A stretch of DNA of 64,000 bases, taken from NCBI RefSeq assembly GCF_964204645.1, contig NC_134036.1:9527859-9591858 (forward strand), read 5' to 3'. Each line of letters starts with the position of its first letter. Position 1 is the first letter of the stretch. The position numbers and the translations under genes are program-made. Shown piece after piece: positions 19,419 through 57,078 of the stretch. The notes beneath the pieces were generated by a model that worked only from the letters and a program-made list of their open reading frames with translations, made no database searches and was not told where the DNA came from. Source of the DNA: Tubulanus polymorphus (taxonomy: Eukaryota > Animalia > Nemertea).

Positions 19419-20969
19419 TGAGTGATTTTTTTTAAGGATCAAAATCGTTATAATTCCTCATTTTTCAGATGTGTCCGGGTTTTTGCTAGAAATCCTCGTT
19501 TGATGACCGAAAAGTGATAACAATAAGAGTGAAATTCGATATATCTAAATCATTTATTCAAAGGTTTCTCAGGTATTGCCTCAATTTTTCAACACCGTAT
19601 TTATTTACTATTTTTTTATGTCTTTATTCTTTTCTGCGACAAGCACTATTCTCCATGCTGGCATGTACTTTTTGAACGCGGCCCGAATCGCCTTCACCTC
19701 CTCCGTTGCATATCTTGTTCGCTTTTTTACGCGCTGCAAAACAAAATGGATAAGAATGATCCTGAAACTGTCTTGGTTGGCGGAAACAAATAAAAATGAA
19801 CTTACCACCGATACGTCGGTTGTGCTGGATGAGGCTAGGCTTATATTTTGTTCTCGGTCGGAACTGTCTTCTTCGTCTTCTTCATCGTTTGTTTGACCTC
19901 GTTCCTCGCTTCGTTCGCCTGGTTCAACATCTTCAGTGCCGACATCTGCGTCTTCCGGGGGGCACTCGTTCCTGCATCCGATTCCATTTCTATTTCTTCC
20001 GGGGGGCACTCGTTCCGGCCTCCGATTCCGTTCGAGGTTTTTTTGTTAAGACACCTGTTTCGAGCTGACAAAAAGAAAGAACTGGTTATGCTTGATGAAA
20101 CAAAATTGTGTCTATTACAGCCATTATGCCTACCCCGAATGTCCGTTTTACGGCTTTGCTCACGTCGATGGTTCCTTTGTGTCCATCCTTTAAGTTGTAG
20201 AACCTTTGAGCTGTCTTTTCACTGTGTAACATGTAGTGCGATAATTGCGTTCGCAATCGCGGATTCTTATCTGCCATGGCGGTCATAATGGATTTTCGGA
20301 TTATCGTAGGCGTAACCTGTCTTTTTCCAATGGTCAACTTTACGTACTGTTGTAAAGGTCTGAAAAACATATCATGAATTAGTCGCTGAATTTCATTTCC
20401 TAAAATGATTGATACAATTACTGACCGTTTGAGGTAATGAGACGGAAGAACACCTCCCTCGAAGTTACGCCAAATCGTTTGGTCTGGTTCGTTGTCGAAT
20501 CGCTTCGCGAATGTTTTCAGAAATCCAAATGGTACAGATTCAAGGTGAATATACCCGGCACCATACTTAGCGGTTGTCTTGTGCGGTATAACCTGAAAAA
20601 GAAAATAGATAATAATCGCTGAATAGTTCAGATACTTTGAACAATGAATGGGCTATACCTTGATCGTATACGTATTATCGACATCTTTCTTCGCATCATT
20701 AATCGCGCTCGGGGTAATGCCAACGGTTAGCGAAGGGCGGCTTGCTCCCAACGCAGTAACCACGAACAACACGAAGTTGCGTACAATGCAGTACTCCTCT
20801 GCAGTCAACGACGTCGGCTTTTTCTTTAACAGTTCTACTGCTGCTTTTGATGTCTCCGATTGTAGAATTTTTTTAACATCATCACAGTCAAGCAGTAGTT
20901 CTACAAAAAAGATTAAACATGACAGGAAAAATTCACCCTTAGTCACTGCATGCAGTGTATGTATGTATG

Positions 20970-21312
20970 AGTAGTGATGGTGGGTTACTATAGGCCCGTG
21001 GTTAAATTGTGGTTGTGGTTAAATCCAAGATGGCGGCTGTCATGTGATCCAAGATGGCGTCCGTCCAAGATGGCGGCTGTGGTCACGTGATCAAAGATGG
21101 CGCCCCAATCCAAGATGGCGACTGTGGTCACGTGATCAAAGATGGCGCCCCGATCCAAGATGGCGGTTGTGGTCACGTGATCAAAGATGGCGGATTTTGA
21201 AATTTCGATGGATGCTTACACCAGCTGTTACCCGATTACTCATGCGATAATCCGCGTTCGAATAGATTAAACAATACCAAATAACGACAGTTATATATTT
21301 CAAACAATGTTA
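20970..21312 (+). repeat. Left terminal inverted repeat, 343 bp
   Basis: Reverse complement of 36855-37197 with 3 mismatches counted by eye. Confidence 0.97.
21027..21192 (+). promoter_or_regulatory. Array of 8 AAGATGGCG (YY1 consensus) and 3 GGTCACGTGATC (E-box, USF/TFE type) motifs in the TIR
   Basis: Motifs counted directly; factor assignment rests on known consensus sequences. Confidence 0.6.
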
Positions 21313-21520
21313 CATATGTGAAACCATTGCCACGACACAAAAACAAGTGCGGGCAAGAATATTTATGCAATAGATTTACATCATAGGTCGAAAAGTTATC
21401 ATTTAGTTACCAGCCATCAAGGGGTAAACATCGTCACGATCGCAAAGGAATATATTAAAATGGAGCCGACTAGTTCATCGTATCTCTCCGCGGTCTCTGC
21501 ATATCGTAGAAGTCGATGAT

Positions 21521-22374
21521 ATGTGTGCACCGAAAAAGCGTCAAAAACTTAACTTACAGGAACGAAGAGGAAAATACCCCAATCTAAAATTGGATTTTAG
21601 TGGTACGTTAAATTTTTGATTTAATTTAATTTTCAATATCTTTGTACTTTTAACTTGGGGGGGGGGGATATCATGTAGCGGGGTCACTTTTCATGACAGT
21701 CGTTGTTAATAATAATTATTTCGTTTTCTTTTTCAGGCTTCCACGATGAAAATGCTACGGACAATGTTTTAACACCGCAGTCATTACGGCAAGTCTCCAA
21801 TACAGAATGTATAACCTACAAGGCGAATTTCAACCAGGATCCTCACTATATAGGAATGAGGGTATATGCGTCTGTAAAATTGTGGCAGGGGAAGAAACGA
21901 ATCGACATACGATTGCATGATTGTAATCGTACAATGAAACTATTCCCTACAAAGTGTGGAATTTCGTTGTATTTGGAGGAATGGATAAATCTAAACCGTC
22001 GAAAAGCAGCCATCGAGGATGATATCTTATCCGTAAAAAACAATCATTTACACAAAGGCGTGTTCAGCTTAGGTCGAAATAACTATTTAAAAATATACCG
22101 TTCACTACATTCAGGGCATATTTGCGTTGACATTAGAAAATATACTAGAGACGTTGTCGTCGGTGAAACAAAAGCCACCAGTACCGGTATAACGTTGTCT
22201 CTCGCGCAGTGGCAAAATTTAGAAGCTATCAATTTCGAGCACGATGCACCGGAACTAGAAGAAATGTCAATCTGTTTTCACGAAAATCAGGAGGATCGAT
22301 GTTTATTTTGTCCAGATGATGACACGTCAGATATACTGCAATGCCCCGAGTACTTCGATATTTCATTTAAGTAA
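21521..22374 (+). CDS. Tandem PC4/Sub1-domain protein (ssDNA-binding / transcriptional coactivator), 2 exons
   Basis: Exon 1 MCAPKKRQKL.. (NLS-like); GT-AG intron 21603-21736 in phase; PC4 signatures YASVKLWQGKKRIDIR..PTKCGISLYLEEW and CVDIRKY..ATSTGITLSLAQWQNL; C-terminal Cys/His cluster. Confidence 0.8.
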
Positions 22375-22865
22375 AAAACACAATCATATATGTATAAGCG
22401 TAAAAATAAAAGTATAATTTATTGATCTCTTTATGAATACGTAATAAAAAGTATAAAAATAATATAGAATAAACATCTTTTTTCATCATTCTTCTGGTAT
22501 ATATATGGATCGTGACATATGATATATATTGAAATAAGAATATAAAACGGAATATCTGGATTTTACAACACTCATCGGAAATTTGAGGATTAGAGCATAG
22601 TTGCCGATTTTACAAATATACAACCAAAAAAAAAACAGTTATCATTCTTACTACGGTAATACATCTAATGTACGTCGTAAATGATATAAAACAAAATTGA
22701 TACAAACAATACGGGTAAAATATGTTGTTTACTTCAAATCGTTGGACAACGATAAATGTAAAAACATTTGTTCTTTATGCGTAAATGATATAAAACGAAA
22801 TCGATACAAACCATATGGGTAAAATATACAAAAAACAGTTTTCGTTCATAATTTCTCATTTTTTC

Positions 22866-25800
22866 TCAAAAACCAAATGGAACGGTAATGTGCGGAGTAC
22901 CCGGAACAAACGCACGTTTCGTATATACAGCACGATAAATCTTTCGTTCATCTCTATTTACAATGTCGCACGTTTTTATTAGCCTAGTAATTTTGTTCGG
23001 GTTATTAACGTACAAATGATCAAATTTCCCGACGACGACCATTTCTAACATAGAATTAAAGTTTATTATTTTATTATTTCTATGGTTAAGCGATATCCCC
23101 TTAACTTTACATACCGTGGAATACTTTTTATCCCGCGGCGAGTACACATTAAACGCGTAATTTTTTGGCCCTCCCGATACAAACTCTGTGATATAGGCCC
23201 CCTCCCCATAATCCCCCGATAACTCGTCGGTCATATCCCCTAAAAATAATCCAGTAGAGGGGCACCAATCCCCCGGTTTGTGAACGTATATTATGGAATC
23301 CGTATCTGAGTATAGGGTTCGATCCCCTAATTTTTCCATATAGCTATATAATATCAACCGCGCATGCGCCGTTGTGAATGCGGCTACAGTAACGTTTTTT
23401 CTCAAACTCATTTCGACAGCGTCGTCGACCTTTTTATAGTGTACGCGTACAATCCCGTCGTTGCACAATAACACATCGCTGATCTCTAACGACGAGTCGT
23501 TTATCATGGCGAACAAATCACCCGGGTCGGAAATATATTTCGATGTAGTTTTATTTTGTTTCTGCCCGAGTTTCCCCCACATTGAATTTAGACATAACTT
23601 CGCGACAGTTCGAAGGCCACTAATCTTTTTGATTTTCTCTTTTTCCAAATGAACCCCCTCCCGAAATTTGTAATCATCTATGCATTTATCTCTTTCAGCC
23701 TCTGACATATTATCGTGCGGCCACCCACTGGCTTCGGTTTTCACTTTAAGAAATTGATTAATGTAATCTTTGAACAGGCCCGTTGCATGTGAGTTCCAAT
23801 GCCAAACCTCATGAATTTGAATGATTTTATAACCCAAACTTATGGCTTTCTCCACCTCTAGCGTAACCCACTCCCCCAAAAGAACGCGCTCTGTTTCGTT
23901 ATGCGTGCATACGTCGTGTTGGTTACACGTGTTGGCGCATGTTGCGCAAAGTGGGAACGTCAATTTACCACCGGACCTGTATGGTAATACGGGCAGAAAT
24001 AAACCCCGGGGTGGTAAAATTGAGCATTTGATTAGACCGTAATATTCAGATATATCGCCCCTGAAATTTTCAGTGATAACATCTGGGTGCCCAATCGGGT
24101 AGCTACATCGACTATTCACGTACGGGTATAAAGAGCAAATGTCGATGTAGCTGATTTTTTCATCGTCGACGATTTTATGATGAAGCTTTATGGCGTTAGT
24201 TCGACCCCCGTAGAAACATTTTCTAGGTTCGAGGGGGTCGAAAACAGTTACACGTTCCACAAAAGACTTAAAATTTACGTCGTCACGAATCTTACGGTTG
24301 TAATCGTGTTCCCACATTTGCACAACAGTATAACCCATTGTTTCCAACTCGTGCTTACGACGTAACGTAGCCTGATACACGTCGTCAAACGTACGACCAC
24401 CTCTGTTACAAGCTACCGGGTCACCTCTAACCGGGAAGCATTCGGGGCAACCGTGAAAGTAACACCCGTTAAACTCGTAGACGGTGCGTGTTTTTTCGTG
24501 GAAGCCGTCTACCTTAAATTTACCGAGTGTTACTTCACCCCCGTTCAAAACGTGTTTGATATCCAAATTTTTTTCCACCGCCAACCATTTCAACCACCGA
24601 ACAGCCATTTTTGAATACTTTGCGTTTGGTTTATATCCACCCGGTGGTATGAGACCAATCGTGTCGGGTTTTAAAAAACGCGATCTGAGTGCGAGATTGC
24701 ACGCTGCGGCGATCGTGATGCAACCGTCGAATGGGTCGACACTCGTAATACTATAGAATAGCTCTTGGAATTTGACTACGGATTGCATCAGAATATCGAC
24801 ATCCGAGCGGCAATACTCGACTAGCTCGGTTTGCATATCGAAATGTTTTTCAAGCTGTTCGGCGTGCCATTTGAGAAATTGCTGTCGATCGTTCTCGTTC
24901 ATTCTGTCGGGGTTATAATATTTTGATTCGGGTACCGGACCGGAATAATTCAAAGTTTCCTCCCGGCAGAAGAGATAGGGAAAATACCCCTTTTTTAATT
25001 CAATTAACCCCAACGTCGATGGTAATTTTACCAATTTCATGGGTAAAAAGTTTAATGTATCTAAAAATTGCATATTCAAATACTTCACTTACATGGACAT
25101 GATTTTACCGCCATTAGGGATAACTTCGGGTAAAATGCCCTGATTCACTAGAAACCTTAACACAAAGTAACCGTCGAATGACATGAAATTGTGGGCAAAC
25201 ACCAGCGACCCTCGGTTCTCTTCTGAAAATAACCATTCGCAGAACGAGGTATCGCTGGTAAATATGTGCTCGTTTTTCCCACAATCGCTACATGTCGAAT
25301 CGGCGGTTCTTTTGGTCAAAGCACAAGTACCGCACGTACGGTGCGCAATTGCCAAAATAACTCTGTGCGTACCATCCACCGTCATCGTCTCGAAGTCAAA
25401 CGATATTAATTTTTTTTCCAAGACGAATTCGGTAGATTTTTCGGCGACCTTTTCATCGTCGTCGTCGTCGTCGTTAGACTTTTTTGTGACCAGTTGCATG
25501 TAACAGAGGTGATCGAGGGGCATATCTTTACCGCACGATTTGCAAAAGTTCAACCCGCAATTATGATCGTCTAATTGATTTCGTGCGACAATTTTTTTAC
25601 AACTGAGACAACGTGCTTTTCGATCGCACATTACCGAACCGAATTTATTTTTGCGAGTCGTGTGCTGAAGGAAACACGACTCGTTTTTGAAATATATGCG
25701 GCACCTAGCGCAATAGAATACACCGGGTTGCTTAACGCAATCTATACCTAAACATAAAGAACAAATGTTTTTACATTTGTCGTTTTCCAACGATTTGAAT

Positions 25801-27182
25801 CCTCTTCTACATTTAAAACAGTAGTACGATTTACACGTGAATGCTGTCATCGATTTGATAACGTCGAAGTGGTTATCGGAATATAAAAGAATGATATGTC
25901 GTTCACAATCGGCTTTCCCGTTTTCATAAAGATATCTGTAACTGACGTTATCACCGGTGACAACAATCACGTGGTATTGTTTCAAAACGGTTTTGCAAAA
26001 TTTATCTAGCTCACCTAAACCACAAAGACCGACTGGAACGTTGGCCTCATGGTGTAATTGTATAGCAGCTGTTTGTTGAGCGCACTTTTCTGGATGTCTC
26101 AATTGGTCGTATGCGGGGTTATTGTCGGCTAGCGCTTTACCTACTACGAGTGCCCTCGCCAGACATATCTCGTCGTCGGGGTTGATAATGCATACAATCG
26201 ATCGTTTCGTTTTCGTGAAATTTTCTAGATTCACGCTAACGCGTTTCTTATAACCACCGCCTTCGGGTAGTCTAATAAAAATGCAATGGAAAATTATTCC
26301 ATTCACATCCAACGATTCATGCGATTGCAACACCTTTCCGATCGTATCTACTATGAACTCTAAAGAGAGTTCCCTGACATTCATCAGCGGAAAGTTGATA
26401 TTGCCGTTTAAATCGGGATGTTCGATTGACAACCTCATGTGATCGCGATCAGTGGCACCCATCATCTCGAAGATTCCCTCCATGATTGTATTTATTGAAT
26501 TACGAATGAGTGTACTAATCTCAGGCGGTTGGTCATCCTGAGTATCGTTCGATGGTTCGTCGTCATCGGGCATGTTGAGGGTTGCTTTAAACACATCGGT
26601 TTTCATCGAAAACTTTTTACTCTCTTGTCGATGCATCTGGAAAGACCATGAATTACAACGTTTTAAAACATTGAAAATATTTCACATTAACTTATATTTT
26701 ATAATTATATAGCTTCTTTATAAAAGTAAAGCGATACATACTCTTCGTAACGTAATACCGTCTTTTATTATTTCGTCGTATGCGTCTGTTCGTTTCCTTT
26801 TCTGTTTCGGTTCTTCTTCGCTGGTACTGGGTTTTTGAATGCAAACTTCGGAGTGTTTTTTCAACCCTGTTACGCTCCCAAACACTTTGGTACACCACGT
26901 GCATCGGAATTCGGAAGATTTTGTATTCGTCATTGAAGTACTACTACTCGCTGCGGGTGATGACACGTGCGGTAACGGATCTGTTGTTGTTGTTGTTGTT
27001 TGGGGTGATGATAGTCGGTGTTGTCTCGACTTCATGTGTCGAACCAGGGCATCCTTCCTACCGAATGCCTTCCCGCACAACGAGCACTTAAACCCTTTCT
27101 TGCCGATATGCGTCATTTCGTGGCGTTCGAGTACGTGTTTGTATTCGAACGTTTTTCCACAAATTTTACAATCATGCACCAT
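22866..27182 (-). pseudogene. Protein-primed family B DNA polymerase with N-terminal C2H2 exon, OTU-like protease region, exonuclease and Vsr-like nuclease insert; one in-frame stop
   Basis: Exo motifs FDFET, AHNFMSFDGYF, YCRSDVDIL; Pol motifs YIDICSLYP, KLCLNSMWGKLGQ, YSDTDS, GPKNY; DEICLARA..NHFDV (OTU-like); VDGF..YEFNGCYFHGC..QMWEHD; phase-0 intron 26741-26637; TAA at 25091-25089 joins the two ORFs in frame. Confidence 0.92.
26742..27182 (-). CDS. C2H2 zinc-finger exon (3 fingers), probably exon 1 of pPolB
   Basis: [50 protein letters not shown]; gtatgt donor after exactly 147 codons. Confidence 0.8.
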
Positions 27183-27316
27183 TTTTTCTTTTTGTTTTCT
27201 GAAAAATATAACAAACCCCCGGAAAATTAGTTATACATTTTATCAATCATTAAAAGAGATATACTTAAACATATACTCGATATACCCGAAAAAAGCGTGT
27301 AATATAGTTTTTTAAA

Positions 27317-27964
27317 ATGACTGAATATACCGGCCCTCGAAATTTGATTCACCCGATGACCGCCTTAGTTAGTGGTCCCACCGGATGTGGAAAAACATGA
27401 CTCGTGAAAAACATCATCAAAGAAAAAGTTATAAACGAACCGCCAGAGAAAATTTACTGGTTTTACGGGGAAGCGCAGTCGAAGTTATTCGCGGACCTAC
27501 AGGATGAAGGGGTGACGTTTATTCAAGGATTTTCATCAGAGATTTACGAAAATATAGATGGTAGTCAACGTACTTTGATAATTATCGATGATTTGATTGA
27601 TGAAATTGCGTCAGACAAAAATCTAGCGGTCATTTATACAAAGGGGTCACACCATAAAAACATATCGGTGATCACTATAGTTCAAAATTTATTTCCCAAA
27701 GGGCGACAATTCAGAAACATTAGTCTTAATTGTCACTATATAATAGCGTTCAAGTCGGCGAGGGACAGAAATCAAATAAAAACTCTAGCGCAACAAGCCG
27801 GTCTGAGGAAGGAAGTCGAATACGCGTTCAAAGATGCTACTAAAAATCCTCACGGATATTTGTTATTGGACTTCAAACCTCACACGGAAGATAGATGGCG
27901 TATAAGGACCCGCATTCTACCTAGCGATAAATACCACGTTGTATATAAACCGAGAAAAACTTAA
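27317..27964 (+). pseudogene. FtsK/A32-like genome-packaging ATPase with an in-frame TGA
   Basis: ATG 27317; Walker A GPTGCGKT followed by TGA (27398-27400); Walker B LIIIDD; SHHKNISVITIVQNLF; GYLLLD. Confidence 0.92.
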
Positions 27965-28006
27965 GCATTAAAAGTAACTGTCCGAGATTTCGATAATGTT
28001 GTGAAT

Positions 28007-28443
28007 ATGATTAAAAGGATGGCCAAGTCGCGAAGTGTACTACCCGCGAAACGTCGCAAACCCGATAAGCATAGTAATATTAAAAAGTATACGCCCCATC
28101 TACACGTATTGGCAACATCTGATCGGAAACTAAGAAAAGGAGTTGTTGACAATGCGCCTTTAGGATTCATTAAATGTTTGTCGGAAATGTGTATGAATTC
28201 GCTCGTCGGAAATATACCGCACAGTGCAAAAGAGAAACGCGTTTTGAAACAGCATAAACGATACATACGTATGCTAGCAAACAAATCTCTTGCAGGGAAA
28301 CACAAACGGAATTATTTCGCAAAAAGGTGGCTCTTTGCCATTCTTATTACCGGCTTTATTACCCGCTCTCGGTGGTCTAGCGGCTAGTGCAGCAGGAGCT
28401 GCTATAGGAGCAACGATCGAAAACAAAATTAGAAATGGCTAAC
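28007..28443 (+). pseudogene. Basic core protein with adenovirus protein X-like tail; frameshifted
   Basis: Basic N-terminus CLSEMCMNSLVGNIP; after a 1-nt shift at ~28315-28320 it reads QKGGSLPFLLPALLPALGGLAASAAGAAIG..NG*. Confidence 0.7.
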
Positions 28444-29130
28444 CCTGTTGAGAAACTCATTATCGTACCCGAATCAATGTTGACCTTATTACAAGAATAT
28501 CTAGAAGAACGACAACTCGACGACAAAACTGTTTTGTCGAATGAAAAGAATTATTTCGTTTACAATCAACGTTTACATCAAATCTTGAAAGATAGGGATT
28601 CACCTACGCAGATACCCGACGTACCAGAGAAAATACAGAATGAACCCGAAGCGGAAAGAGAAGAAAAACATCAACATGAAACGCCATTCGAAATTGATAA
28701 CATTCTCAAACTTTTACCACAAAGATATCATGAAAAATCGGGACAGATTTTACGTATGTTTAAGAATAATTCTCACTTGATAGACTGGAACGAACGTATG
28801 GAAATAAACTTCAAGGGAATTTTAGTGCCGAATAGTAATTTGATTGATTTGTTATATACGTCAATGGTTCAGTCGAGCAATTTTAACGCACCGGGTATGG
28901 ATGAATTTGTCGAAACGTTCCAAATACTAAATATACCCGTAACGCTCGTAAATAATGGTAAATTACGCGATATGATAAAAATGACTTCTCTTACCATTGA
29001 TGCGAAGCCTAAGCGTAAAAGAGCCTTAGTTCTCGGTGTAGATGACGAGTCCGATGTCAATCAGCGCGGTTCTGGACGACAAGTTGTGAAACGAAATAAA
29101 GACAAATGTAATAAATGGATCTTCTTTTAA
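28435..29130 (+). CDS. Conserved Polinton protein of unknown function
   Basis: IDWNERMEINFKGILVPNSNLIDLL..PGMDEFVETFQILNIPVTLVNN..KWIFF resembles the ORF commonly found between the pX-like gene and integrase. Confidence 0.75.
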   Translation: MANPVEKLIIVPESMLTLLQEYLEERQLDDKTVLSNEKNYFVYNQRLHQILKDRDSPTQIPDVPEKIQNEPEAEREEKHQHETPFEIDNILKLLPQRYHEKSGQILRMFKNNSHLIDWNERMEINFKGILVPNSNLIDLLYTSMVQSSNFNAPGMDEFVETFQILNIPVTLVNNGKLRDMIKMTSLTIDAKPKRKRALVLGVDDESDVNQRGSGRQVVKRNKDKCNKWIFF

Positions 29131-29241
29131 TACGAATCTAACAATAAATACTATTATCATTATTATTATGTAATGACAACATATGTCGCTCTCTTCATTT
29201 GTCTACACGGAGTACCCGTTTATACACGAATCGTCATTAAA

Positions 29242-29796
29242 ATGGAGATAGTCAACGTGGTCGGAACGGCTTGCTTAAACTGTGAAATTGATCTAACTAG
29301 TTTAGCTAATACAGAAAGTAACATTATTTACAACAAACGTAATTTCAGTGGAGCGATATGGAAACATCGGAAAGTCGATGGAACTTGTTTATTATTTAGA
29401 AATGGTAAAATGGTAATAACGGGTTCGAAAAGTATATCTCGGAACAAACAAGCAGCGAGACAATTTGGTCGAAAAGTGCAAAAGTTGGGATATAAAGTTA
29501 CATTTTCCGATTTCAAAGTACAAACTATTTCGGCTGTGAAGAAAACTGGAAAACGAATTTCTCTGAAAACTCTTGACAATTTGCTGGGTAGCAGCTCGAG
29601 TTATGAACCAGAAATATTTCCCGGACTCGTTTATACAGCGGAAAATGGAATAAAATGTATCGTACATAACGGTGGAACAATCATCTTAACAGGAGCTAGA
29701 AATGAACGCGTTATAGAAGATGTGTACTCTAACATTGTTTTAAATATCCTTCTCTGTCACGACTCTTTTAAAAAAAACTTTATAAAGTCGTATTAG
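29242..29796 (+). CDS. Divergent TATA-box-binding-protein-like protein (two-repeat core only)
   Basis: IVNVVGTACLNCEIDL, YNKRNF, CLLFRNGKMVITGSKS, AARQFGRKVQKLGY..FSDFKVQ, SSYEPEIFPGLVY, GTIILTGAR align with the TBP core; upstream in-frame ATG at 29173. Confidence 0.92.
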   Translation: MEIVNVVGTACLNCEIDLTSLANTESNIIYNKRNFSGAIWKHRKVDGTCLLFRNGKMVITGSKSISRNKQAARQFGRKVQKLGYKVTFSDFKVQTISAVKKTGKRISLKTLDNLLGSSSSYEPEIFPGLVYTAENGIKCIVHNGGTIILTGARNERVIEDVYSNIVLNILLCHDSFKKNFIKSY

Positions 29797-29798
29797 TA

Positions 29799-30095
29799 TT
29801 GATGATGCTGATGATTATGGAGAAGATTGTGAGATTTATGTTATACGGATTATTCGAAATGACACACATATACGTGATATTTATACCTAGAAATTATCTA
29901 GACGACATCAATCGTATGGTGACAACTTTCGTCGAAAAACGTAGTGACGTGAATAGCTTAAAAACGATTCTAAAGGAACTCGATATGTCCGGTAATCTAT
30001 TTCGTAAAATTGTTGGCGCGATATTTTGTATAAAATTAACTAAAACATTACCCACTCAGAAGTATGTTATAAAGAAACTTTATATGATTTTTTGA
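29799..30095 (+). CDS. Hypothetical protein, possibly degenerate
   Basis: ORF followed by AATAAA; no recognisable motif. Confidence 0.3.
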   Translation: MMMLMIMEKIVRFMLYGLFEMTHIYVIFIPRNYLDDINRMVTTFVEKRSDVNSLKTILKELDMSGNLFRKIVGAIFCIKLTKTLPTQKYVIKKLYMIF

Positions 30096-30346
30096 AATAA
30101 AAAATGTTCAAACCTAATTTTGCGTAATTAAATTTTCTATCAAACCCAAGTTTACTCAATCGGGAATTTTGTCGAACCTTTTGGTATTTTCCCTTTTTAA
30201 TTTGTAAAACCGGAAATTAATGGCATATAAATATGTTCAAACAGGAAATAGAGTTTCATTTCTTTATTACGAACCTGGTTTGGTATAAGATCCTTTAAAA
30301 GGCTACATACCGCGTGTAAACATCTCTATTATAATTATTTGCAAAC

Positions 30347-30616
30347 ATGTGTAGTAAGGTATTGAAATTGTGCTGCTGTTTAGCCGATAAAAATTTAGAG
30401 TCGAACTGCAAGTTTAGTAAAATAAATTGTATTTCCTCTTGTTGTCGAGGTAATACAATCGTAATTGATAATAATGACAAAGTTGACAGAAATGCAGAAC
30501 AAGTGGTTGAAAAAAGTATATTTCACACCAAAACATCCCGGTTCTTTTGGAAGCGTTCAAACTCTAACCAGACTAGCAAAAGTAAACGGTCAGAAGATTT
30601 CTCGAAGACAAATTAA
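30347..30616 (+). CDS. Small Cys-rich ORF overlapping the integrase 5' end in another frame
   Basis: aaacATG context, TATA-like tataaata at ~30226, LCCCL..NC..NCISSCC. Confidence 0.45.
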   Translation: MCSKVLKLCCCLADKNLESNCKFSKINCISSCCRGNTIVIDNNDKVDRNAEQVVEKSIFHTKTSRFFWKRSNSNQTSKSKRSEDFSKTN

Positions 30617-31577: not shown

Positions 31578-31591
31578 AAAAATCAATCGAT

Positions 31592-32416: not shown

Positions 32417-32835
32417 TGAGGACTGTTTGCCAAATAGATCACGCCGCGTGTTGTAGATATTACTCGAGTCAAGGTGGATCAGGGATAGATATATACACCT
32501 CACACCCCGTACAGGGTGGCCGCGGACTAGGATCCGCGGTGAGTGGTTTGACTCGTAAGGCGATACCGTTTTTGAAGAATATCGCGTCCACAGTTACACC
32601 TTACGTAATAAAAACAGGCGTCAAGGTTTTCGGTGATTATTTAAGAGGATGGCCGTTAGGGGTCTCTATTAAAAACCGTGCATCGGAGACCGCGAGCGAA
32701 GCTCTGAATTCAACTTTCAACGTTAGAAAGGAACAGGTTTTAAAAAGCAAGAAACGGCGTCGCATCAGCCGCGGACGTTTAGTAGCACGTGGTAGGAGAC
32801 ACAACGATTCTTTAACAGAAACAGAAGCCTACTAG
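32416..32835 (+). CDS. Conserved small basic Gly-rich virion/core protein (putative adenain substrate)
   Basis: YYSSQGGSG..QGGRGLGSAVSGLTRKAIPFLK, Arg/Lys-rich tail; lies between minor and major capsid genes. Confidence 0.7.
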   Translation: MRTVCQIDHAACCRYYSSQGGSGIDIYTSHPVQGGRGLGSAVSGLTRKAIPFLKNIASTVTPYVIKTGVKVFGDYLRGWPLGVSIKNRASETASEALNSTFNVRKEQVLKSKKRRRISRGRLVARGRRHNDSLTETEAY

Positions 32836-32854
32836 AAAAATTAACTCATTGGAA

Positions 32855-34162: not shown

Positions 34163-34167
34163 AAATA

Positions 34168-36809: not shown

Positions 36810-36854
36810 AACGCTATTCCTATATTACATATATATATCTTGGTTTGAAATAAA

Positions 36855-40600: not shown

Positions 40601-40671
40601 TAACTATAGGCCTAAAAATTTCTTTAAATCCATTGACTTACCCCTGTGTTCAACAATTACTGAATCCCTTC

Positions 40672-45295: not shown

Positions 45296-45332
45296 CTGAA
45301 ATCAGTTCATTACGTACCACTATCTGTGAAGA

Positions 45333-46327: not shown

Positions 46328-46960
46328 GTGAACGGGGTCCCCAATCAAAAAGCCATTAGACTTACCTCAAGGTACCTGTGTTCCGTACATCTCACGTAAG
46401 TTTCAAGTAAAACCGTTGAGCAATATTCTTGTTACTAGCCGAATTCGAAGTATCAAAGCCTATGATGCTCACTACTAGTGTTGCCAGCTCTCTAACTTGT
46501 ATACGGCACAAACACAAACAAGGCTATTAAAAATTCCACAGTTGCGTTCAGTCGAGCAATGTCCTAATTCAACGATCGATTCGTAGAAGTAAGAGATAAA
46601 AATATCACTACTGCTTACGTGTTTACTACAGATTCAGAACAATACAGCTCTATCGATATAAGGACACAGACACAAACACACGTATTTAGGACGTGCTGTG
46701 GGAATGACACGTAGGCAATACACATACGTATATGGATACTGTTTGAATCGGGCTTAAATTTCGATGTTTAGAGGCTCACAGTGAGTAAACAGTGCAATTC
46801 TAATTAATATCATATACAGTATATGTCAATGCAGCGTAGTACTTGTGATACAGAATGGTTTCACCGACAGTGAAAGTAAATTGCAGTTTTTATGGTTTCA
46901 CCGACAGTGAAAATAAATTGCAGTTTATATCCTTTCAGTACGATCCAGTGTGAAAAAGAA

Positions 46961-47886
<926 letters not shown>

Positions 47887-50244
47887 TAGTACGATTATAA
47901 ATATTTACATGACACTAGTGTTTAGATTGGTACTATAGATATGCGCTTTAATCATTTATATTTCCCTTTTCAATTAATTCTATAAATTTCTATATATCTA
48001 TATTCATTATTCTAGATAGTAGATAATCTTGTTATTTTATATAGATTACGCTAATAAAGATTAAGCTAATTTAGATAGCTAGCTTTGACAGAAGATCGGG
48101 AAGGATATTGTGTGAAAATAATTGTTTCTCAAATCTAATGGAAACTAGCTAAAAGCTAATTGAAAGTCTGAGATTAGAATTTAAAATCTAATATAAATCC
48201 TAGAATAATTATTATTAAGAAAAGGCCTAAAGAGTCTAAAAATATAGCAGAATCTGAGTATGGCTTACCTGAAATTTGATTGAAGACAAACCAATGAATA
48301 TGTAGTTGATATCTTTATTCAACGAGAGCATGAGCAGGAATGACCAAGCCAGGCCTGAGCTGGACATCCTTGACTCAAGCTCCACCCCAAACAAGCTCGG
48401 GGTCGGGGGCACATATCATTGGCTGATTAGCCACCAGACTCACAAATCTGACAGCTGACCTCGGTAAACAACACTAAACAAACAGGGAGCGAGGGATTTA
48501 ATTATTGATTGTCTTCAAAGTCAGGCTTGGTTAATCTTTAGATTTTAGAGACGAATGGCATGTAAACATCCTGACACTAAACCCATAACAAAGGCGTGTC
48601 TGCCATATTGCATAAAGATATTAATAGAATTTGGAATAAAACTAAATTTGGAGACTAAAAAAATGAATTTGATTTGAGAATGAATATGATATTTGTAATC
48701 TTTAGATTTTGCAGAATATTTCTATATCTATTGTGACACTATTTCAATAAAGAAGAATTTTGAAAAAAAGCAAAACACTATAATACTATGTTTAAAAAGT
48801 TATCAAAGACATTTGAAAAAAGTTTTCTGAATTCGTCAACTGTTAAACTAGTAACAACCAGATGTGTTCCCATTAAACCACCGACCGCGAGCCGAGTCGA
48901 TGTGAGATGTGCCCTACACTGAAAATCTCAAGTGCTATACAACCGGTTTTTTAGGTGCCTCTGAATGTCGGCCGTTAAAAAACTGAACAATTCCCATTTG
49001 GAAAGGGCCTACGTAGTAAGAGAAAATTCAAGATGTGTATATCGTGTGAGATACAGGCTCCATATTTCATGTGCGTTTGGAATTTAACCTTGTTTATAAC
49101 GAAACACGCATGTATTTATGCTATTTTAGATTTAAAAAGAGCGCACGAAAGTGTTTCATGAGACCCGCAAATAACGTCAAGTTATTTATGCATTTTTGAT
49201 TTATATGAATAAATTTCGCTTCGAAATCTTTAAATTTCTCAGGTGGATTATTCAATAAATTCACAACAGTCCATTATGGATTAGTTTGACGCCAATCGTT
49301 CTTTTAAAGATCTTTCTTTCTCGAAGAAAGATTTTCTTAAAAACTTTGATTATGGCGAATCTTTTATGTGTCCGATAGTTAAACCTCCGGGTATTATAAT
49401 AGAACACAAATTTTTAAAGATATTCATAACATACTGAAGGATATCACAGTTTATACCCAAAGATATGCAGTTGGATAGATCTTTTTGTTTCGACTCGCAT
49501 GCGACAGTAAAAACGGTACTTGATATAATAAGTGAACTTCATCATTGATATTTTCACTAATCTACTTGAATTCCAAAAAAGAACTGACAATGAACAAGGG
49601 TTACAGCTGTGACTGATATCGCTCCAAATTTCAATTCCTATGAACACTTTTAATATAAAGAAAACTATTAACGAAACAGTTTTTAGAGGCGAAGAATCCG
49701 CGTTACCATCGAATTTTCAAAACTTGAAGGAATGTTTAATGCCTCGGTGACCACTGGTCTAGTACGCGGTTTTCTGAAATGAAAGTGGCCAAGTCTAAAG
49801 AACAACTTTTGTATCACATGATTTCAAAAATTAGGAACCCAATGCGTTTAATGATTTAATTAATTGGTATCGCGCAGATTGGTTGAAAGACGGGTGTTAG
49901 TCACCTTGTGATTTTATTGTTTTTCATGCATCGATTAATTATTCTTATTATAACTTATTTGTAGGCGCATCCCGCAAACATTTTCTATTCGTTGAGTTTT
50001 CAAACGCAGTACTGTTCAGATGATTCGAGTCAAGTAGTAAAAAAGTTTATGTATTAGCATTACTATGCAGTGAAAATAACGCACTGCGGCAAGTGAGGTG
50101 CTGTGATCCAGATGTGTAACCCATTTATGGGTAATAAATTTCCATCATGTCAACGCCATTCAAAAACAGTAGCGAATCTTTCTGTTGGTTTCTAGAAATA
50201 GCAATACGACGACAAGCACTTTCGAATTCGACCACGATATTTGA

Positions 50245-50715
50245 GAAGTTTCACTGGTGGTCAGTGATGGTCAATTTATGAATTTTAATGGCGAATCCTT
50301 TCTAGTTTCACACCAAAAGCGGTACCGGTATATCGTTCTTTCAAGAAGTTTCAATTGGTCAGTGGTGGTCAGTGATGGTCAATTTATGAATTTTCAATGG
50401 CGAATCGTTTCTAGTTTGACACCATAACGCGGTATATCGTTTTCATATTCGAGAAGTTTGAATTGGTCATTGGTGGTCAGTGATGGTCAATTTATGAATT
50501 TTCAATGGCGAATCGTTTCTAGTTTGACACCATAACGCGGTATATCGTTTTCATATTCGAGAAGTTTCAATTGGTCAGTGGTGGTCAGTGATGGTCAATT
50601 TATGAATTTTCAATGGCGAATCGTTTCTAGTTTGACACCATAACGCGGTATATCGTTTTCATATTCGAGAAGTTTGAATTGGTCAGTGGTGGTCAGTGAT
50701 GGTCAGTGATGAATT
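50245..50715 (+). repeat. 108-bp tandem repeat, about 4.3 copies
   Basis: tggtggtcagtgatggtca recurs at 50363, 50471, 50579, 50687, with a degenerate copy at ~50255. Confidence 0.9.
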
Positions 50716-51263
50716 TGCAATGATGATTCCTTAGAGGTTTGAAAACAAACATTACATGATAAATTTCCGAAATTCGAAGTCAAGTGTTCAGACTCGGGGA
50801 TATCTCAATTGGTCAGTTACTGACCATCATGGTGTCACCATTGTGGTCTATAGCTCAAATGAAACATGTGGAACCGACGAAGGGGCCCAAAAGCGTTAAG
50901 TCATTTCCTGGAGTGACGTGATCCAAAAATGCCCTAACTGGAAAAGGCAGTCTCTCAATTGGATGAAACCAAATCGGACAGGACAATTAAAATTTGGGAA
51001 GGTCACAGGTAGTGGTCTTTCTACGAAGCCCACGCGGTGAGCGTATCATTATGAAATCTTTTTTTAAACCACCATGTACCACGAAGCAATAAGCATCGTT
51101 GTAAGCACTTGAAACAGCCATTAACCACTTGCAACTGTCAGATCAAACATCATACCGCATCCCCGCAAAGAGGGGTGGTTCAGCAAACCGGAGTTCTCAT
51201 TGGCCTCTCTAGACTACCCCGCCAGTACGGGTAGCCGAGCAAACCGGAAAACTCATAATGCGA

Positions 51264-52244
51264 GTTTTCCCACGGGGATACCCACTGTCGGACAGCGCAC
51301 CGGACCGATCGATGCAACGAGTTAGGTTCGAATCCCATTATTTGCAGGCAATTTTATATGGAATATTATATTACGATACCGTTGACTGGCTGCCACCTGT
51401 AGAAGAAGTCAGAATCAAGTGGGGTGAAAGAGACCAGGCACCTAATGTCTATTTCTACTAGGCAAACTTCGGTTATCGAAGTTCATCGACTTTTTGAGAA
51501 CTTCAGAAACGAATATTATCAGATAAATATTGAGCACGTTCGCGGTGTAGGACCGTAGTTGTAGATGGTTGCAAACATGAAATCCTACGACCAAACAAGT
51601 ACCGGTTCAAATTCCTTTGAAATTATTATAATTTTACGGCCGTCCAGTACCGGTACCAATAAGATTCTTTTGATCCAAATAATCAGCATAGGGACATATA
51701 TGTTATAGCAGTCACAAAGTAAACATTAAAAAAAACGAAACCATTTTATAATCTTTCATATCATTTAATTCTAAAAGATAAACCACATTCGCTTATAACA
51801 ACAATGTAGACACACAACACGCATGAAATGAAATATACATGCGAATGAATGAAATATACATAATGTCTATTTATTTTCGTCTGACATCGATCCAGTTCCA
51901 CAGTCGTGAGTTAACTCTCAGTTACTTAGAATCAATTCATTTCCAATGTTTTAAATCCAGAGACCAGAGTCAAATCTTAACTCGGAAATGAGTCCTGGAG
52001 AATGACCCATGATGTCATCACAAATCCTACGTTTACGTACCATCGATTTGTATTCCTTCAGTTACTGCAGCGATACTCTGTATCACTGAATTCGCAAAGC
52101 ACGTATTGCCTAGGTTCTCCATTATTTGGAACAGTATCGTTAAGTTGTTGACTAGCGATATGATAAATTATCAAATACTAATTCCGGGTGTTGAAAACCT
52201 GGGTCCGGTGCCCTGTCCGACAGTGGGTATCCCCGTGGGAAAAC
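51264..52244. mobile_element. Non-autonomous DNA transposon with 43-bp TIRs
   Basis: GTTTTCCCACGGGGATACCCACTGTCGGACAG(C/G)GCACCGGACC at 51264-51306, inverted at 52202-52244 (1 mismatch); TSD not resolved. Confidence 0.75.
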
Positions 52245-52799
52245 CCCGTTTATTATTCATAGTAAAAATGAAGAAATTCCGCGTTTTTGGAAAATTCCGC
52301 GATTCCGTCTTTCCGCGATATGACAACACCGTATGAAATGGCAGGAAGACATTTGAAATAACAATTCAGTGTAGTATTATACTTATAATAGATGAATTTT
52401 GAATAGTTTTTGTTCATATATCAGCAAATATCATAATACCTTTTCTTTAACTGATGATCTCTCAATCAAAAACACCTAAAAGGATAAAATGGACAACTTT
52501 TCATGTCGTATATCATGCTTTTATAGTTTTAGTAAATGTGTATGTCCCGGGTGTATGTGCGCGTACTGTTTCGACCTAAGGATTACAGAAAAAGAATGAT
52601 ATAGATGAATCACCTGATTTCATTTGAAAAAATAATAAATTTTTCGCTAAAAAGGACGTCTTCCAAAGCTGCGTTAAATTCATGAAATCAGACAGTGATT
52701 ACGTAAACACCTCCTTTAGCATAAACGAATTAATGTTGAGATAAAAACTCGCGACGCCAAACGCAATTTTGATTTTATTTGTAGTTGATTTTCTCGGGA

Positions 52800-53757
52800 C
52801 GCATCCACGTGAAAATCAAGTACGACATCAAGTACATACAGTCCAACGAACTCACGCTGCATGTGGCGGCCAGAGTTTGCGGAGATGCTGCGGAAGCTTG
52901 TGGGAAGGAACTAGGCTACGAGAAATGCGGGGAAGCCCACATGGATCGTAAGGGCGGAGTGACGACGGAGGAGGCAGACAATGCGCCACTGCCAGTGTAG
53001 GGAAGAGGGAGCACGTACATCTGAGAGCGCTCCAGTTGCTAGAAACCTGCATGGGTGACCTGAAGACGAAAATCAAAGACCACTTATGCGCCAAGGCGAA
53101 GGCAATCTGGGGATCCACGCTCAGTTCCAACCAGAAAGTAACCTCGCACAATGCCGCGTGTATGGGTGCCTTAAGGTAATACTGCACGATAGGGTCGTTG
53201 CACCGCACAGATGCTGATGAAATCCATAGCTCGCTACGGAAAGTGACGAGTCAGAACGGGGCACTGTCCAATCACCAGTCGATTGATAGACTATATCTAC
53301 CCAAGGAAGGGGCGGACTGGGGCTCCAGTCAACTTGGTACGTGCTGACGCAAACCGCTGTGGGTTTTTCTAAGTACGTACTACAGACCGAGTACCCGTTC
53401 GCCAGGAATCTGGCGGATGTGTTCTGCTACCTGGCTAAGTACAATAAAGACAATGACAATGTGGTCCGTGTAGTGTTTAAGCGAGCTGGCGCTGAGCGCA
53501 CCCACTGGTCGGGAGACAGGAAGGATGCAGACATCTTGCCAACCAAGAACGAAATCAATGCCAGAATCACCGGGGAAGTCCGAGCCGAAATTAGGGCAAA
53601 GACGATCCACGGGAAGTTCTGGTAGGCGGAGAGGGGCAACGCCACCTTTGCTTGGCTGACCACTAAGTCGAGGAATTACACATCGGAAACGGTGTGTGAT
53701 ATAATGTCGATGCAAGATGGAACCGTTCGGACTGCCTACTGGCAACACCGGCTTGCA
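52800..53757 (+). mobile_element. Degenerate RLE-type (R4/Dong/NeSL-like) non-LTR retrotransposon, RT C-terminal fragment
   Basis: IWGSTLSSNQKVTSHNAA, LRKVTSQNG, SIDRLYLPKEG/GLGLQS, KTIHGKFW; many frameshifts. Confidence 0.65.
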
Positions 53758-54399
53758 GGCTAATAGGGATAAGTAAAAGGTGGGGGGTCGATGTGCGAAA
53801 GGGCCAAATCGATTTCTCGAAACAGCTCTCCGGCCGGAAGTGTCGGGTTTGGAGATTTGAACTACCGGTCACGCATTAAGGACCCCACAGGGAATCTACA
53901 CACGAGAAATGGGCGTCGTTGGACGTATGCTTCCGGAGATATTTCGTTTATTTTACAGCACTGAAAATTTTTTAACCCTCCCAAACGGTACCCGGCCTAT
54001 TCATGAGACCCAGCTCACGTTAGTGGCGGACGAGGCCTCTAGACGCCGCTCGAGTTCGTTAGGAGTCCGCGCATGCGTAGCACGACGCGTTAGACCCCAG
54101 GGGTCGGCCCCGGGACCGAGTACTCGAAAAAGGCTTTTGATATAGAGTGTGCAGAAAAGCAATCCGGTTTGAGGGATCCCTATACTGACAGCCTCTAAGT
54201 AGAATGTGTCTAAAGTCCATCCCATTAGAAGTATCCCTATTCAATCCGGTTCGAATCCCGGATTAGTGATTTTCTTTTTAGGATCAAAATCTTTATAATT
54301 CCTCATTTTTCAGATGTCTCCTGGTTTTTGCTAGAAATCCTCCTTTCGTGACCGAAAAGTGATAACAATTGTGAAATTCGATATGTCTATTTCATTCAT

Positions 54400-57078
54400 T
54401 TAAACATTTCTGAGGTACTGCCTCAATTTTTCAACACGATACTTTTTCACGATTCTTTGTATGTCTTTGATTTTCTCAGCGACTAGCATTATTTTCCAGG
54501 CCCGTAAGTACGTTTTAAATGTGGCGCGAATCGCCTTCACCTCATCGGTCGTGTATCTGGTTCGCTTTCTTACGCACTGCAAAATAAAATGGATAAGAAT
54601 GATCCTGGAACTTTCTTGGTTGGCGAAAACAAATAAAAATGAACTTACCACCGATACATCGGTTGTACTTGATGAGGCGGTCACATTCTGTTCTCCATCA
54701 GAACTGTCATGTTCGACATCTTCGGTTGGTTGACCTCGTTCGACATATTCGGTTGGATGATCTCGTTAGACATCTTCGGTTGGTTGACTTCGACATCTTT
54801 GGTGCGGACATCTGTGCCTGTGTCTTCCGGGGGCACTCGTTCCAGCCTCCGATTCGATTCTAGCCTTTTTCTTTACCTGTTTCGAGCTGACAAAAAGAAA
54901 GAACTGGTTATGCTTGGTGAAACAAAATTGTGTCTACTACAGCCAATATGCCTACCCCGAATGTCCGTTTAACTGCCTTTCTTACATCGATGGTCCCCTT
55001 GTGGCCATCCTTCAGGTTGTAAAAGCTATATGCGGTCTTTTCGCTGTGCAGCATATAGTGGGCCAATTGTTTTCGCAACTCCGGATTCTTGTCCGCCATA
55101 GCAGTCATGATAGACTTTCGGATGATCGCAGGAGTCACCTGTCTCTTGCCAAACGTTGACTTCACGTACTGTTGTAATGGTCTGAACATATCATGAATAA
55201 TTAATTGCTGAATTTCATTTTCTAAAATGATTGATTAAATTACTGACCGATTGAGGTAATGGGATGGTAGAAGACCTCCCTCGTAGTTTCGACAAATCTT
55301 TTTGTCCGGTTCTTTGGCGTATCGCTTGGCGAATGATCTAAGAAATGCAAATGGTACGGATTCAAGATGAATCAAACCGGCTCCGTACTTTGCCGTTGTC
55401 TTGTGCGGTAAAACCTGAAAAAGAAAATAGATAATAATCCCTGAATAGTTCAGATACTTTGAACAATGAATGGGCTATACTTTGATCGTATATGTACTGT
55501 CAGCATCTTCCTTTGCATCGTTTATTGTGCTAGATGTTATGCCTATGGCAAGCGAAGGGCGGCTCGCTCCTAGTGCTGTAACCACGAACAAGAGAAAGTT
55601 CCGTACTGTGTAGTATTCCTCTGCATTCAGTGAAGCCGTCCCTTTCTGCAAAAGTTCTACTGCCGCTTTCGATGTTTCAGATTGCAGTATTTTCTTCACA
55701 TCGTCACCGTCAAGCAGTAGTTCTACAAAAAAGGTTAAACATGTGTTAACAGGAAAAATTCATCCTTAGTCCTTGCATGCAATGTATGTATGTATGTATG
55801 TATGTATGTATTTATGTATGTATGCATGTATGTATGCCCACTTTGCTGCTTGTCATGGACTTCGTGCTGCCTAGCTTTTGAATCCTTTCGTAACTTCTGG
55901 GCGTACGTAGCTAGACGCATTTCGACACGATTCAATGTGTGTTGTCGAATACCCGATACCTTGTGTCCACGCTGGAAATCAAAAGTTTCATCAATATGTA
56001 GCATGTTATGTCGGGTGTGCCGGATTTCTTACTTGACGGTGCACACGTGAAGGGAAGTAGACAGTGCACATGGGAAGGAAAGTAGACGGTGCACAAGGGA
56101 AAGGCTAGGGTAAAAAGTTTTCCAAGAAGACGGTGCACAAGGGATGGGAAGTAGACGGCGCACAAGGGAAGGGAAATAGACGGTGCACAAGGGAAGGGTT
56201 TTAGGTGCAACATCCTGGAGGGAGTAGAGGGAGGTCCATGCATTAATACTCACATCGAGAATGAATTGGATTAATCAATTCTTTATGGTATGAACATAGG
56301 CCTTCAGTGACCCCGGGGTGTTACCGCTGTCTTTTTCCGCTTCCAACAAGTCGACTACGTTTTGAGGCTTTAGTTTGCCATTGCAAAAATTTAGCAACTG
56401 GCAACTATCGCGCACATAAGCCTCTGAAGTTTTCTTCTCCTCAGCCATTGGGCGAAGCCAATGTAGGAATTCCTCATCAAAATCTATCAGACAAATAAGA
56501 ATTAGGTCATCACGAACAAACACAAGAGTAAAATATGTAGGACTTACCCTTTTCATCGGATGGACTTTCTTCATTCGTTTAACATTGTCTTCCTCTTTCT
56601 CTTCTTCCTCCTCTTCACCCCTTCCTCAGTCACCTCACCCTCCTCCACATTACTTTCATCTGCCTTCTCTTCTTCATTGCTTTGATCTCTATCTTTGGGA
56701 CTAGTTTCTTCCACTTCTGAATCAGAATATTTCACTTCCGAATCTGAATCTTTCACGGAATCACTGCTCTGATCTAAAGATAAAAACGAAAGACATGGTA
56801 ATTCGATAACTTTTTCATTCGCAAAGTCAATAGCATCTGATGTTACCTCGCGATAGACATTTAGAATGGCTTGAAGTAATTCCGCATTTTCTACACTGAA
56901 CCATTTATCTCCGCTTGTTATATGGGGCTATGGTCTTGTATTGCGTCTTTGTGACGTCTTCCTCTATTCTCCGATTCCAGTTTCTGGATCGAACACGCCC
57001 CCACTTGTGGCCGACTCTGAGGTGCTGCGGCATGTGTGTCTTTGGCCGCGTGCAAACGGGGCAAGCATGTTTGCGCCG
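54400..57078 (-). pseudogene. Multi-exon tyrosine recombinase YR-2
   Basis: Same exon/intron structure as YR-1; GASRPS, PHKTTAKYG, TPAIIRKS, YMLHSEKTAYSFY; stops at ~56905 and ~56275; empty (TATG)n intron at 55783-55836. Confidence 0.8.

Follow-up and report, generated by a model that had tools for sequence, protein, structure and literature searches.

The stretch analysed here, hereafter the window, comprises 64,000 nucleotides from the nemertean Tubulanus polymorphus (assembly GCF_964204645.1, contig NC_134036.1, positions 9,527,859 to 9,591,858 of the forward strand) and contains two copies of an intron-rich gene whose exons are far more diverged from one another than their introns. Comparison of the window with itself (self-BLAST) revealed a unit of ~3.0 kb that is present twice on the minus strand, termed copy A and copy B. 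Copy B is contiguous (54049-57064), and copy A (19060-20969 plus 37198-38466) is split by a 16.2-kb Polinton/Maverick-like insertion. Both copies display nine exons and eight introns, are linked and share the same orientation; before the insertion they lay about 16 kb apart. Homology between them ends sharply on both sides, the 3′ end falling at 54049/19060, and A and B share no sequence upstream of exon 1 (E1). No terminal direct or inverted repeats delimit the unit, and no further copies were found in the window or in the fetched reference locus L001, which is described below. The sequence has a GC content of ~38% and GT..AG introns of 62-73 nt. The gene model was built from reading frames, splice signals and a global MAFFT alignment of A against B, with the following features, where percentages and fractions are differences between A and B and pS and pN are the proportions of synonymous and non-synonymous sites that differ.

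54049-57064, minus strand: copy B, whole unit, with nine exons, eight introns and a 350-nt 3′ flank
37198-38466, minus strand: copy A, 5′ part, from E1 to the first 43 nt of intron 4
19060-20969, minus strand: copy A, 3′ part, from the remainder of intron 4 to the 3′ flank
B 56847-57064, A 38237-38466, minus strand: E1, two Cys/His zinc-finger-like motifs; 20.2% different, pS 0.58, pN 0.09
B 56774-56846, A 38164-38236, minus strand: intron 1, GT..AG in both; 7/73 different
B 56548-56773, A 37969-38163, minus strand: E2, acidic and of low complexity; 13.7% different, six insertion/deletion (indel) events
B 56484-56547, A 37905-37968, minus strand: intron 2; 4/64 different
B 56254-56483, A 37675-37904, minus strand: E3, integrase N-terminal SAM-like region (weak match only); 20.9% different
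B 55972-56253, A 37371-37674, minus strand: intron 3, with an internal 25-nt minisatellite; final 70 nt 1/70 different
B 55842-55971, A 37241-37370, minus strand: E4; 25/130 different, 18 at third codon positions
B 55723-55841, A 37198-37240 plus 20901-20969, minus strand: intron 4, with a (TACA)n microsatellite; 7/112 different
B 55481-55722, A 20659-20900, minus strand: E5, region of the putative catalytic Arg; 22.3% different
B 55415-55480, A 20593-20658, minus strand: intron 5; 1/66 different
B 55248-55414, A 20426-20592, minus strand: E6, 'HKT' motif; 17.4% different
B 55182-55247, A 20360-20425, minus strand: intron 6; two 3-bp indels and about 5 substitutions
B 54956-55181, A 20134-20359, minus strand: E7, 'IRKS...MLHSEKTA..FY' motifs; 21.2% different, pS 0.76
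B 54887-54955, A 20065-20133, minus strand: intron 7; 3/69 different
B 54649-54886, A 19806-20064, minus strand: E8, repetitive acidic linker; 23% different, seven indel events
B 54577-54648, A 19734-19805, minus strand: intron 8; 4/72 different
B 54400-54576, A 19558-19733, minus strand: E9, including the stop codon; 21.6% different
B 54049-54399, A 19060-19557, minus strand: shared 3′ flank, with units resembling a tRNA 3′ half on the plus strand; 9.1% different

The spliced RefSeq model P0001 independently agrees with the E5/E6, E6/E7 and E8/E9 junctions and with the acceptor of intron 7. It places the donor of E7 30 nt upstream of the donor used here, which was kept because the differences within those 30 nt are spaced by three, in a coding-like manner. 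No in-frame ATG precedes the first zinc-finger-like motif in A or B, and a 5′ exon is either missing or not common to the two copies. Both copies are now broken by stop codons or frameshifts. In copy A, E2 has a TAG at 38027-38029, the frame of E8 is shifted, E9 has lost 1 nt and intron 4 harbours the insertion. In copy B, E1 has a TAA at 56905-56907 and E3 a TGA at 56275-56277, and E8 lacks 5 nt at its start and contains a stop codon.

The exons of A and B differ at 365 of 1808 positions (20.2%), the introns taken together at 74/801 (9.2%) and the 3′ flank at 32/350 (9.1%). For the clean non-coding set, which consists of six short ungapped introns, intron 6 realigned by eye and the 3′ flank, divergence is 63/869 (7.2%). 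Nei-Gojobori estimates over 437 codons gave a pS of 0.588 (synonymous divergence, dS, 1.15) and a pN of 0.097 (non-synonymous divergence, dN, 0.10), with a dN/dS of 0.09, and 83 of the 150 four-fold sites differ. The contrast between synonymous sites and non-coding sequence is extreme (Fisher p 6e-72) and the low divergence extends to all eight introns and the 3′ flank. The original prediction, made by eye, had described exactly such a discordance between exons and introns, with an excess that is almost purely synonymous, and formal alignment bears it out. A dS close to intron divergence, on which that prediction was to fall, was not found, dS being ~16 times intron divergence. Its counts for introns 1, 2, 5, 7 and 8, its description of intron 6 and its count for E4 are reproduced by the values listed above. 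The count of one difference in 70 nt between 37371-37440 and 55972-56041 likewise holds, but that segment is not a whole intron; it forms the 3′ end of intron 3, which measures 304 nt in A and 282 nt in B.

A single divergence fits the nine clean non-coding segments (chi2 7.3, df 8, p 0.51), while a model in which each segment has an independent, exponentially distributed age is rejected (P 0.002). The exons of A and B are alike in GC content (0.46), third-position and codon composition and CpG frequency, with no CpG depletion, which rules out CpG decay or a compositional difference as the cause of their divergence. Exon substitutions are symmetric and near saturation, with a transition/transversion ratio of about 1.2, and 81 of 274 exon differences involve CpG. 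Judged by this spectrum, the exon divergence looks like that of old, near-saturated paralogues, rather than the product of one mutagen or of a recent sweep of ~150 silent changes. The lack of frameshifts in the complex exons was at one point taken as evidence of constraint; this argument was dropped, as indels cluster in low-complexity sequence, both exonic and non-coding.

The boundary between low and high divergence does not coincide with the splice junctions: low divergence continues into every exon for ~12-20 nt. Over the first 15 nt from a junction 9.6% of positions are mismatched, a share that climbs to 20-25% farther in, and codons within 12 nt of a junction present a pS of 0.136 and a pN of 0.052, compared with 0.639 and 0.101, respectively, in the exon cores. 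Thus, the rise in identity next to splice junctions that had been noticed by eye is confirmed. Maximum-likelihood change points fall at 12-20 nt in 11 of the 16 exon ends, and are less scattered than zone lengths from an exponential distribution would be (P 0.02). Of the 14 outermost core differences, 11 are synonymous, although the first amino-acid differences often lie within a few nucleotides; the boundaries are therefore not clearly set by amino-acid differences. At the 3′ end of E4, four silent differences come before the first amino-acid difference. Past the stop codon, divergence remains high for ~15 nt and then drops, in what is a small sample. In copy A an AATAAA overlaps the stop codon, such that the switch in divergence falls about where cleavage would be expected.

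An independent view of copy B is provided by the P0001 locus on OZ123237.1 of GCA_964204645.2 (L001), which matches the window from 60482 to 53367 at 97.4% and whose segment 8802-11827 is an allele or orthologue of copy B, with ~98.6% identity and a position near 10.27 Mb on OZ123237.1. L001 stops ~0.5 kb before the expected start of the reference allele of copy A. Since this independent assembly carries the same B structure, an assembly chimera is ruled out. Copy B and the reference allele differ at 24/1843 exonic positions (1.3%) and 11/809 intronic positions (1.4%; p 0.86), with a pS of 0.010, a pN of 0.012 and hence a dN/dS of about 1. An exon-specific process is not running now in the lineage of copy B. 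The stop codons of copy B in E1 and E3 are both also present in the reference allele, which has neither the 5-nt deletion nor the stop codon of E8, and its E8 is intact. At L001 10684-10906 (P0001 residues about 190-200) the reference displays a Cys ('SFCNL') where A and B in the window both have the putative catalytic Tyr ('FYNL'). RefSeq annotation at L001 covers only E5-E9, joined to a downstream WSC-like exon. An opposite-strand gene call with a 280-residue product spans all 26.9 kb of the locus (L001 1-26856, corresponding to approximately 51000-60500 on the plus strand of the window); this places copy B within an intron of a host gene, as is probably true of copy A.

These observations are best accommodated by a mosaic ancestry of the pair, in which old exon cores are set within a young scaffold, a reading to which we assign a probability of about 0.85. 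In the exon cores, old paralogous sequence has diverged while the protein was strongly constrained (dS about 1, dN/dS about 0.05-0.09). The scaffold, namely the eight introns, the exon edges of 12-20 nt and ~350 nt of 3′ flank, has one recent divergence time, corresponding to ~7%. Both copies have been drifting roughly neutrally since the scaffold split, gaining stop codons and frameshifts: the pN of edge codons (0.05) is near the non-coding divergence and pS is similar to pN between copy B and the reference allele, from which roughly neutral evolution since that split follows.

How the mosaic was assembled is a more tentative matter. A single recombination event with limits set by exon-intron structure, rather than many events, comes near to even odds but falls short of them. 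Overall, one such event would be the best explanation, advanced with some reserve; in its simplest form, the recombination partner would have been a copy of a diverged paralogue that stemmed from a spliced transcript and had no introns. A 3-kb gene segment would have been duplicated to a position ~16 kb away, after which one copy would have paired with a homologue lacking introns, made from the spliced mRNA of a diverged paralogue as complementary DNA (cDNA) or as a retrocopy. Conversion would then have given the paired exon cores the sequence of the donor, whereas that of the recipient would have survived in the introns, which looped out, and in the badly paired bases adjoining them. That the template lacked introns is possible but doubtful, and the same must be said of the replacement of the exon cores in one step, to ~15 nt from the junctions and out to the poly(A) site, from spliced RNA or cDNA of the diverged paralogue. 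A variant that involves two genes, where old linked paralogues would pair and the unpaired introns, exon edges and 3′ flank would be copied across and the exon cores restored, is rather improbable. The original prediction had listed cDNA-templated exon replacement and conversion on introns among its alternatives, behind another idea; these are now the two leading explanations.

Several considerations weigh against the single event proposed here, and particularly against an intron-less template. Neither the window nor L001 contains a donor, be it a third paralogue, a retrocopy or a copy without introns. We know of no documented case of conversion from an intron-less template that spared all introns, and the usual outcome of cDNA conversion is intron loss. 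Such a template would need heteroduplex to form at ~80% identity, and loops would have to be resolved in one direction and mismatches in the other. As A and B share no scaffold upstream of E1, the boundary of the duplication must also fall in, or at the start of, E1. Exons differ in pS, from 0.37 in E6 to 0.76 in E7 (chi2 p 0.025), which a single donor would not predict. Change-point estimates are noisy, five of them being outliers (0, 4, 24, 40 and 41 nt), and the pattern is known from one pair, A and B.

When the introns of paralogues are closer to each other than their exons, gene conversion is the textbook reading, and known examples show a mild contrast with its focus at adaptive amino-acid positions. 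Concerted evolution of this type is the strongest rival to the single event, although it appears somewhat unlikely: short, frequent conversion would have kept introns, exon edges and 3′ flank alike between old linked paralogues, conversions that reached the cores would have been removed by selection or blocked by mismatches, and conversion would have ceased ~7% of divergence ago. The phenomenon is established in the primate red/green opsin genes and the colobine RNASE1 duplicates, where paralogous introns have become more alike than exons through intronic gene conversion (PMC3924837). Similar to A and B, those duplicates are linked, share one orientation and are separated by tens of kb, with introns and untranslated regions closer than coding exons. 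The explanation requires just the two genes that are seen, first amino-acid differences often lie near the zone boundaries, and the heterogeneity of pS among exons would suit occasional partial conversion. In contrast with the opsin and RNASE1 genes, however, where exons differ by a few percent, most strongly around amino-acid sites known to be adaptive, and introns are kilobases long, A and B display a dS of about 1.15, a dN/dS of 0.09 that gives no sign of divergent selection on the protein, short introns of one shared age and a low-divergence zone that stops at a similar depth inside every exon.

Other properties of the pair are also difficult to reconcile with opsin-type conversion. Homology islands would measure merely ~90-100 nt, that is, a 62-73-nt intron plus its edges, between cores that are ~22% diverged. 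A mismatch limit alone would leave constrained exons convertible for longer than introns, which is the opposite of what is observed. The differing island ages expected of this process were not found, and rejection of independent ages (P 0.002) means that conversion must have been very frequent and then have stopped simultaneously in all islands. The extreme contrast between silent sites and introns argues against a steady-state form of the model, and the zone widths are fairly uniform. Finally, the outermost core differences are mostly synonymous, as exemplified by the 3′ end of E4; boundaries of this synonymous-first kind were initially regarded as decisive against opsin-type conversion, a view that was softened, as amino-acid differences lie nearby at about the spacing expected from their density.

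A very improbable alternative is a mutational process that was raised in exon cores only, for instance through damage to DNA displaced by re-annealed spliced mRNA, together with purifying selection. Such a process would account for the restriction of the excess to mature mRNA and for the sparing of exon ends near intron loops. However, copy B displays no excess of exon differences from the reference allele, and the substitutions bear no single-mutagen signature, with common transversions, no strand asymmetry and CpG involved in less than a third of them. Furthermore, the copies appear unconstrained since the scaffold split (edge pN 0.05 against 0.07 in non-coding sequence), and therefore selection could not have filtered a 10-20-fold excess of mutations.

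The explanation originally favoured, selection for silent recoding of the mature mRNA by which a mobile element would escape PIWI-interacting (piRNA) or small interfering (siRNA) RNAs, with introns evolving at the neutral rate, gained no support from the analysis and is now regarded as highly improbable. It fits the restriction of the almost purely synonymous excess to exon cores and ~15 nt of 3′ untranslated region, but it requires ~150 adaptive silent substitutions and does not explain why exon ends, which are part of the mRNA, were spared. The symmetric, saturation-like spectrum with equal composition in the two copies, the similar divergence of exons (1.3%) and introns (1.4%) between copy B and the reference allele, and the broken state of both copies also speak against it. 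Mobility itself is unsupported, as there are two linked copies with no terminal repeats and almost no database relatives.

Each intron resembles only its counterpart in the other copy, with no similarity among introns or to other parts of the window, which rules out an origin from introners or another intron-generating transposon. Seven of the eight introns (all but intron 3) were folded, and none was more stable than shuffled controls (z -0.7 to +1.8). The introns gave no match to Rfam at gathering score and ARAGORN called nothing; mirtrons or other intron-encoded structured RNAs are ruled out by the fold scores and the lack of Rfam matches. Strong constraint on the introns had also been raised originally. 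Direct constraint on both introns and flank while silent sites became saturated, whether they acted as structured RNAs, mirtrons or regulatory elements or belonged to an overlapping gene as exons, is the least probable explanation of all: although every intron is conserved and the copies lie within a large opposite-strand host gene, the introns are unstructured and unique, conservation is just as high in the 3′ flank, which is not transcribed, almost all bases in eight introns and 350 nt of flank would have to be constrained, and introns evolve as fast as exons between copy B and the reference allele.

In phrase searches of the literature, only the opsin/RNASE1 and venom genes were found as analogies, and no description of an identical phenomenon. 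The A/B pattern is an extreme and structurally sharp variant of the condition in which linked paralogues resemble each other more in their introns than in their exons, with a contrast of about 16-fold that covers all eight tiny introns and ends a fixed short distance inside the exons. Snake venom genes (accelerated evolution, ASSET; PMC2711939) and conotoxin genes combine similar introns (>85%) with profoundly different exons between paralogues. There, most changes in the exons are non-synonymous (dN >= dS) and make for a different protein, whereas in A and B, which do not encode a toxin, change is silent and the protein is kept. Venom-type accelerated evolution of exons was consequently rejected, for the introns are conserved but dN/dS is 0.09. 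Reverse transcriptase-mediated intron loss, or conversion between retrocopy and parent (PMC3652778), resembles the event proposed here in that an intron-less transcript copy recombines with an intron-bearing gene and transfers spliced sequence only. It differs in its known outcome, which is the loss of introns, while A and B keep eight introns and the exon sequence flanking them, and in the donor, which would here be a diverged paralogue rather than the gene's own transcript. If an intron-less template was indeed used, the pair would provide direct genomic evidence that spliced transcripts can overwrite exons without removal of introns, a route for RNA-mediated flow of information between paralogues that confounds the dating of duplications by dS. 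If conversion was instead limited to introns, homology islands of ~100 nt would have been kept identical until silent sites saturated.

The original prediction had labelled the genes as recombinases. The label is plausible from the order of motifs read by eye and from sub-threshold matches, and no significant family match accompanies it. Candidate catalytic motifs occur in the expected order, with 'GASRPS' in E5, 'HKT' in E6 and 'IRKS' and 'MLHSEKTA..FY' in E7, although the first His of the H-x-x-R motif is not present. Exons were searched one at a time, and the only multi-exon query was the RefSeq model P0001, which is also the closest database protein ('uncharacterized protein LOC141914152 [Tubulanus polymorphus]'). 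The catalytic exons and P0001 gave no match to Pfam at E <= 5 or to PHROGs at E <= 1, and none to NCBIfam at E <= 10 other than a chance match to rnfG (E 0.05); PDB sequences returned chance matches only at E <= 10. E3 of copy A matched PF13495 with an E value of 0.005 (17.7 bits, cut-off 27) and the XerD N-terminus with an E value of 0.08, both of which are weak.

Protein searches with the E7 open reading frame (ORF) of copy B or with P0001 found P0001 alone. Besides P0001, a HMMER search with E7 of copy A retrieved a distantly related ORF from a metagenome (P0004), as well as P0002 and P0003, two repeat proteins that were spurious. One metagenome ORF (L002), 34% identical to E7, is the sole distant relative; its matches to XerC/XerD, at E values of 6e-4 to 9e-4, cover profile positions 192-278 and fall well short of the curated cut-offs. 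Nothing was returned by scans of metagenomes for P0001 peptides or for an intron-5 pattern. An AlphaFold2 model of P0001 residues 1-215 has a mean predicted local distance difference test (pLDDT) score of 39, too poor for fold comparison. Cryptons and related eukaryotic tyrosine-recombinase elements (PMC3212892) share with the unit an intron-bearing ORF, tyrosine-recombinase-like motifs and the lack of terminal repeats. In contrast with those elements, A and B display no significant match to a recombinase or to DUF3504, are known as two linked copies and give no sign of recognisable termini, target sites or mobility. Assignment to the Crypton DNA transposons is not supported, given the two linked copies, their sharp but featureless ends, the lack of a further copy in the window and L001, and the single annotated protein in the databases.

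The 16.2-kb insertion in copy A lies outside the pattern of exon and intron divergence. Its predicted gene content, with a protein-primed DNA polymerase B (pPolB) and a retroviral-like integrase, together with its long terminal inverted repeats (TIRs) and 6-bp flanking repeat, identifies it as a Polinton/Maverick-like element. The TIRs measure 357 nt, are 98% identical and have AG..CT ends. TGTATG is found on both flanks, although the target duplication is ambiguous inside the (TGTA)n run. Pfam recognised no capsid genes in the insertion. Its main features are as follows.

20970-37197, strand not assigned: Polinton/Maverick-like insertion of 16.2 kb, splitting intron 4 of copy A at a (TGTA)n run
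22866-25088, minus strand: pPolB (PF03175, 2e-44)
30465-31577, strand not given: integrase with rve (1e-07; 32.5 bits against a cut-off of 32.6) and chromo domains
27404-27964, strand not given: A32-like ATPase, weak match (E 0.002)
34252-34635, strand not given: adenain-like protease, weak match (E 0.03)

Unusual cargo of the insertion includes ORFs for a TATA-binding protein (29173-29796; PF00352, 2e-35), a protein with a PC4 coactivator domain (21703-22374; 3e-16) and a C2H2 zinc-finger protein (26718-27182).

Repeats of several kinds accompany the two copies. The 25-nt minisatellite of intron 3 (37434-37622 and 56035-56223) has a core, GGTGCACAAGG, in common with tandem repeats of ~40 nt at 57099-57566, which lie directly upstream of copy B where A/B homology stops. 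On the plus strand of the shared 3′ flank (19155-19433 and 54200-54277) are the units that resemble a tRNA 3′ half, in which a T run comes after GGTTCGAATCCCGG; A has three such units, 72 nt each and in tandem, and B has one. They were not called by ARAGORN or Rfam and may be a remnant of a short interspersed element (SINE). Just upstream of copy A, a stretch at 38490-38550 ('..ATTGATTTCCTTAAAGGTCAC..CTTATTCTTAG..') was seen by eye to recur at 39300-39365, ~800 nt farther upstream on the minus strand, and may represent a local duplication at the unit boundary.

Between the copies lie a satellite array of 19-nt period with strong GC skew (-0.24; 40606-41760), a second with a period of 9-12 nt (46798-47900) that forms a 458-nt imperfect palindrome, 83% complementary with a 4-nt spacer, and an array of 108-nt tandem repeats (50232-50750). 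Dispersed repeats of 78-91% identity pair 2281-2462 with 10085-10266, 4595-4686 with 11291-11382, and 12640-13903 with L001 17020-18251; these are probably transposon fragments unrelated to the gene pair.

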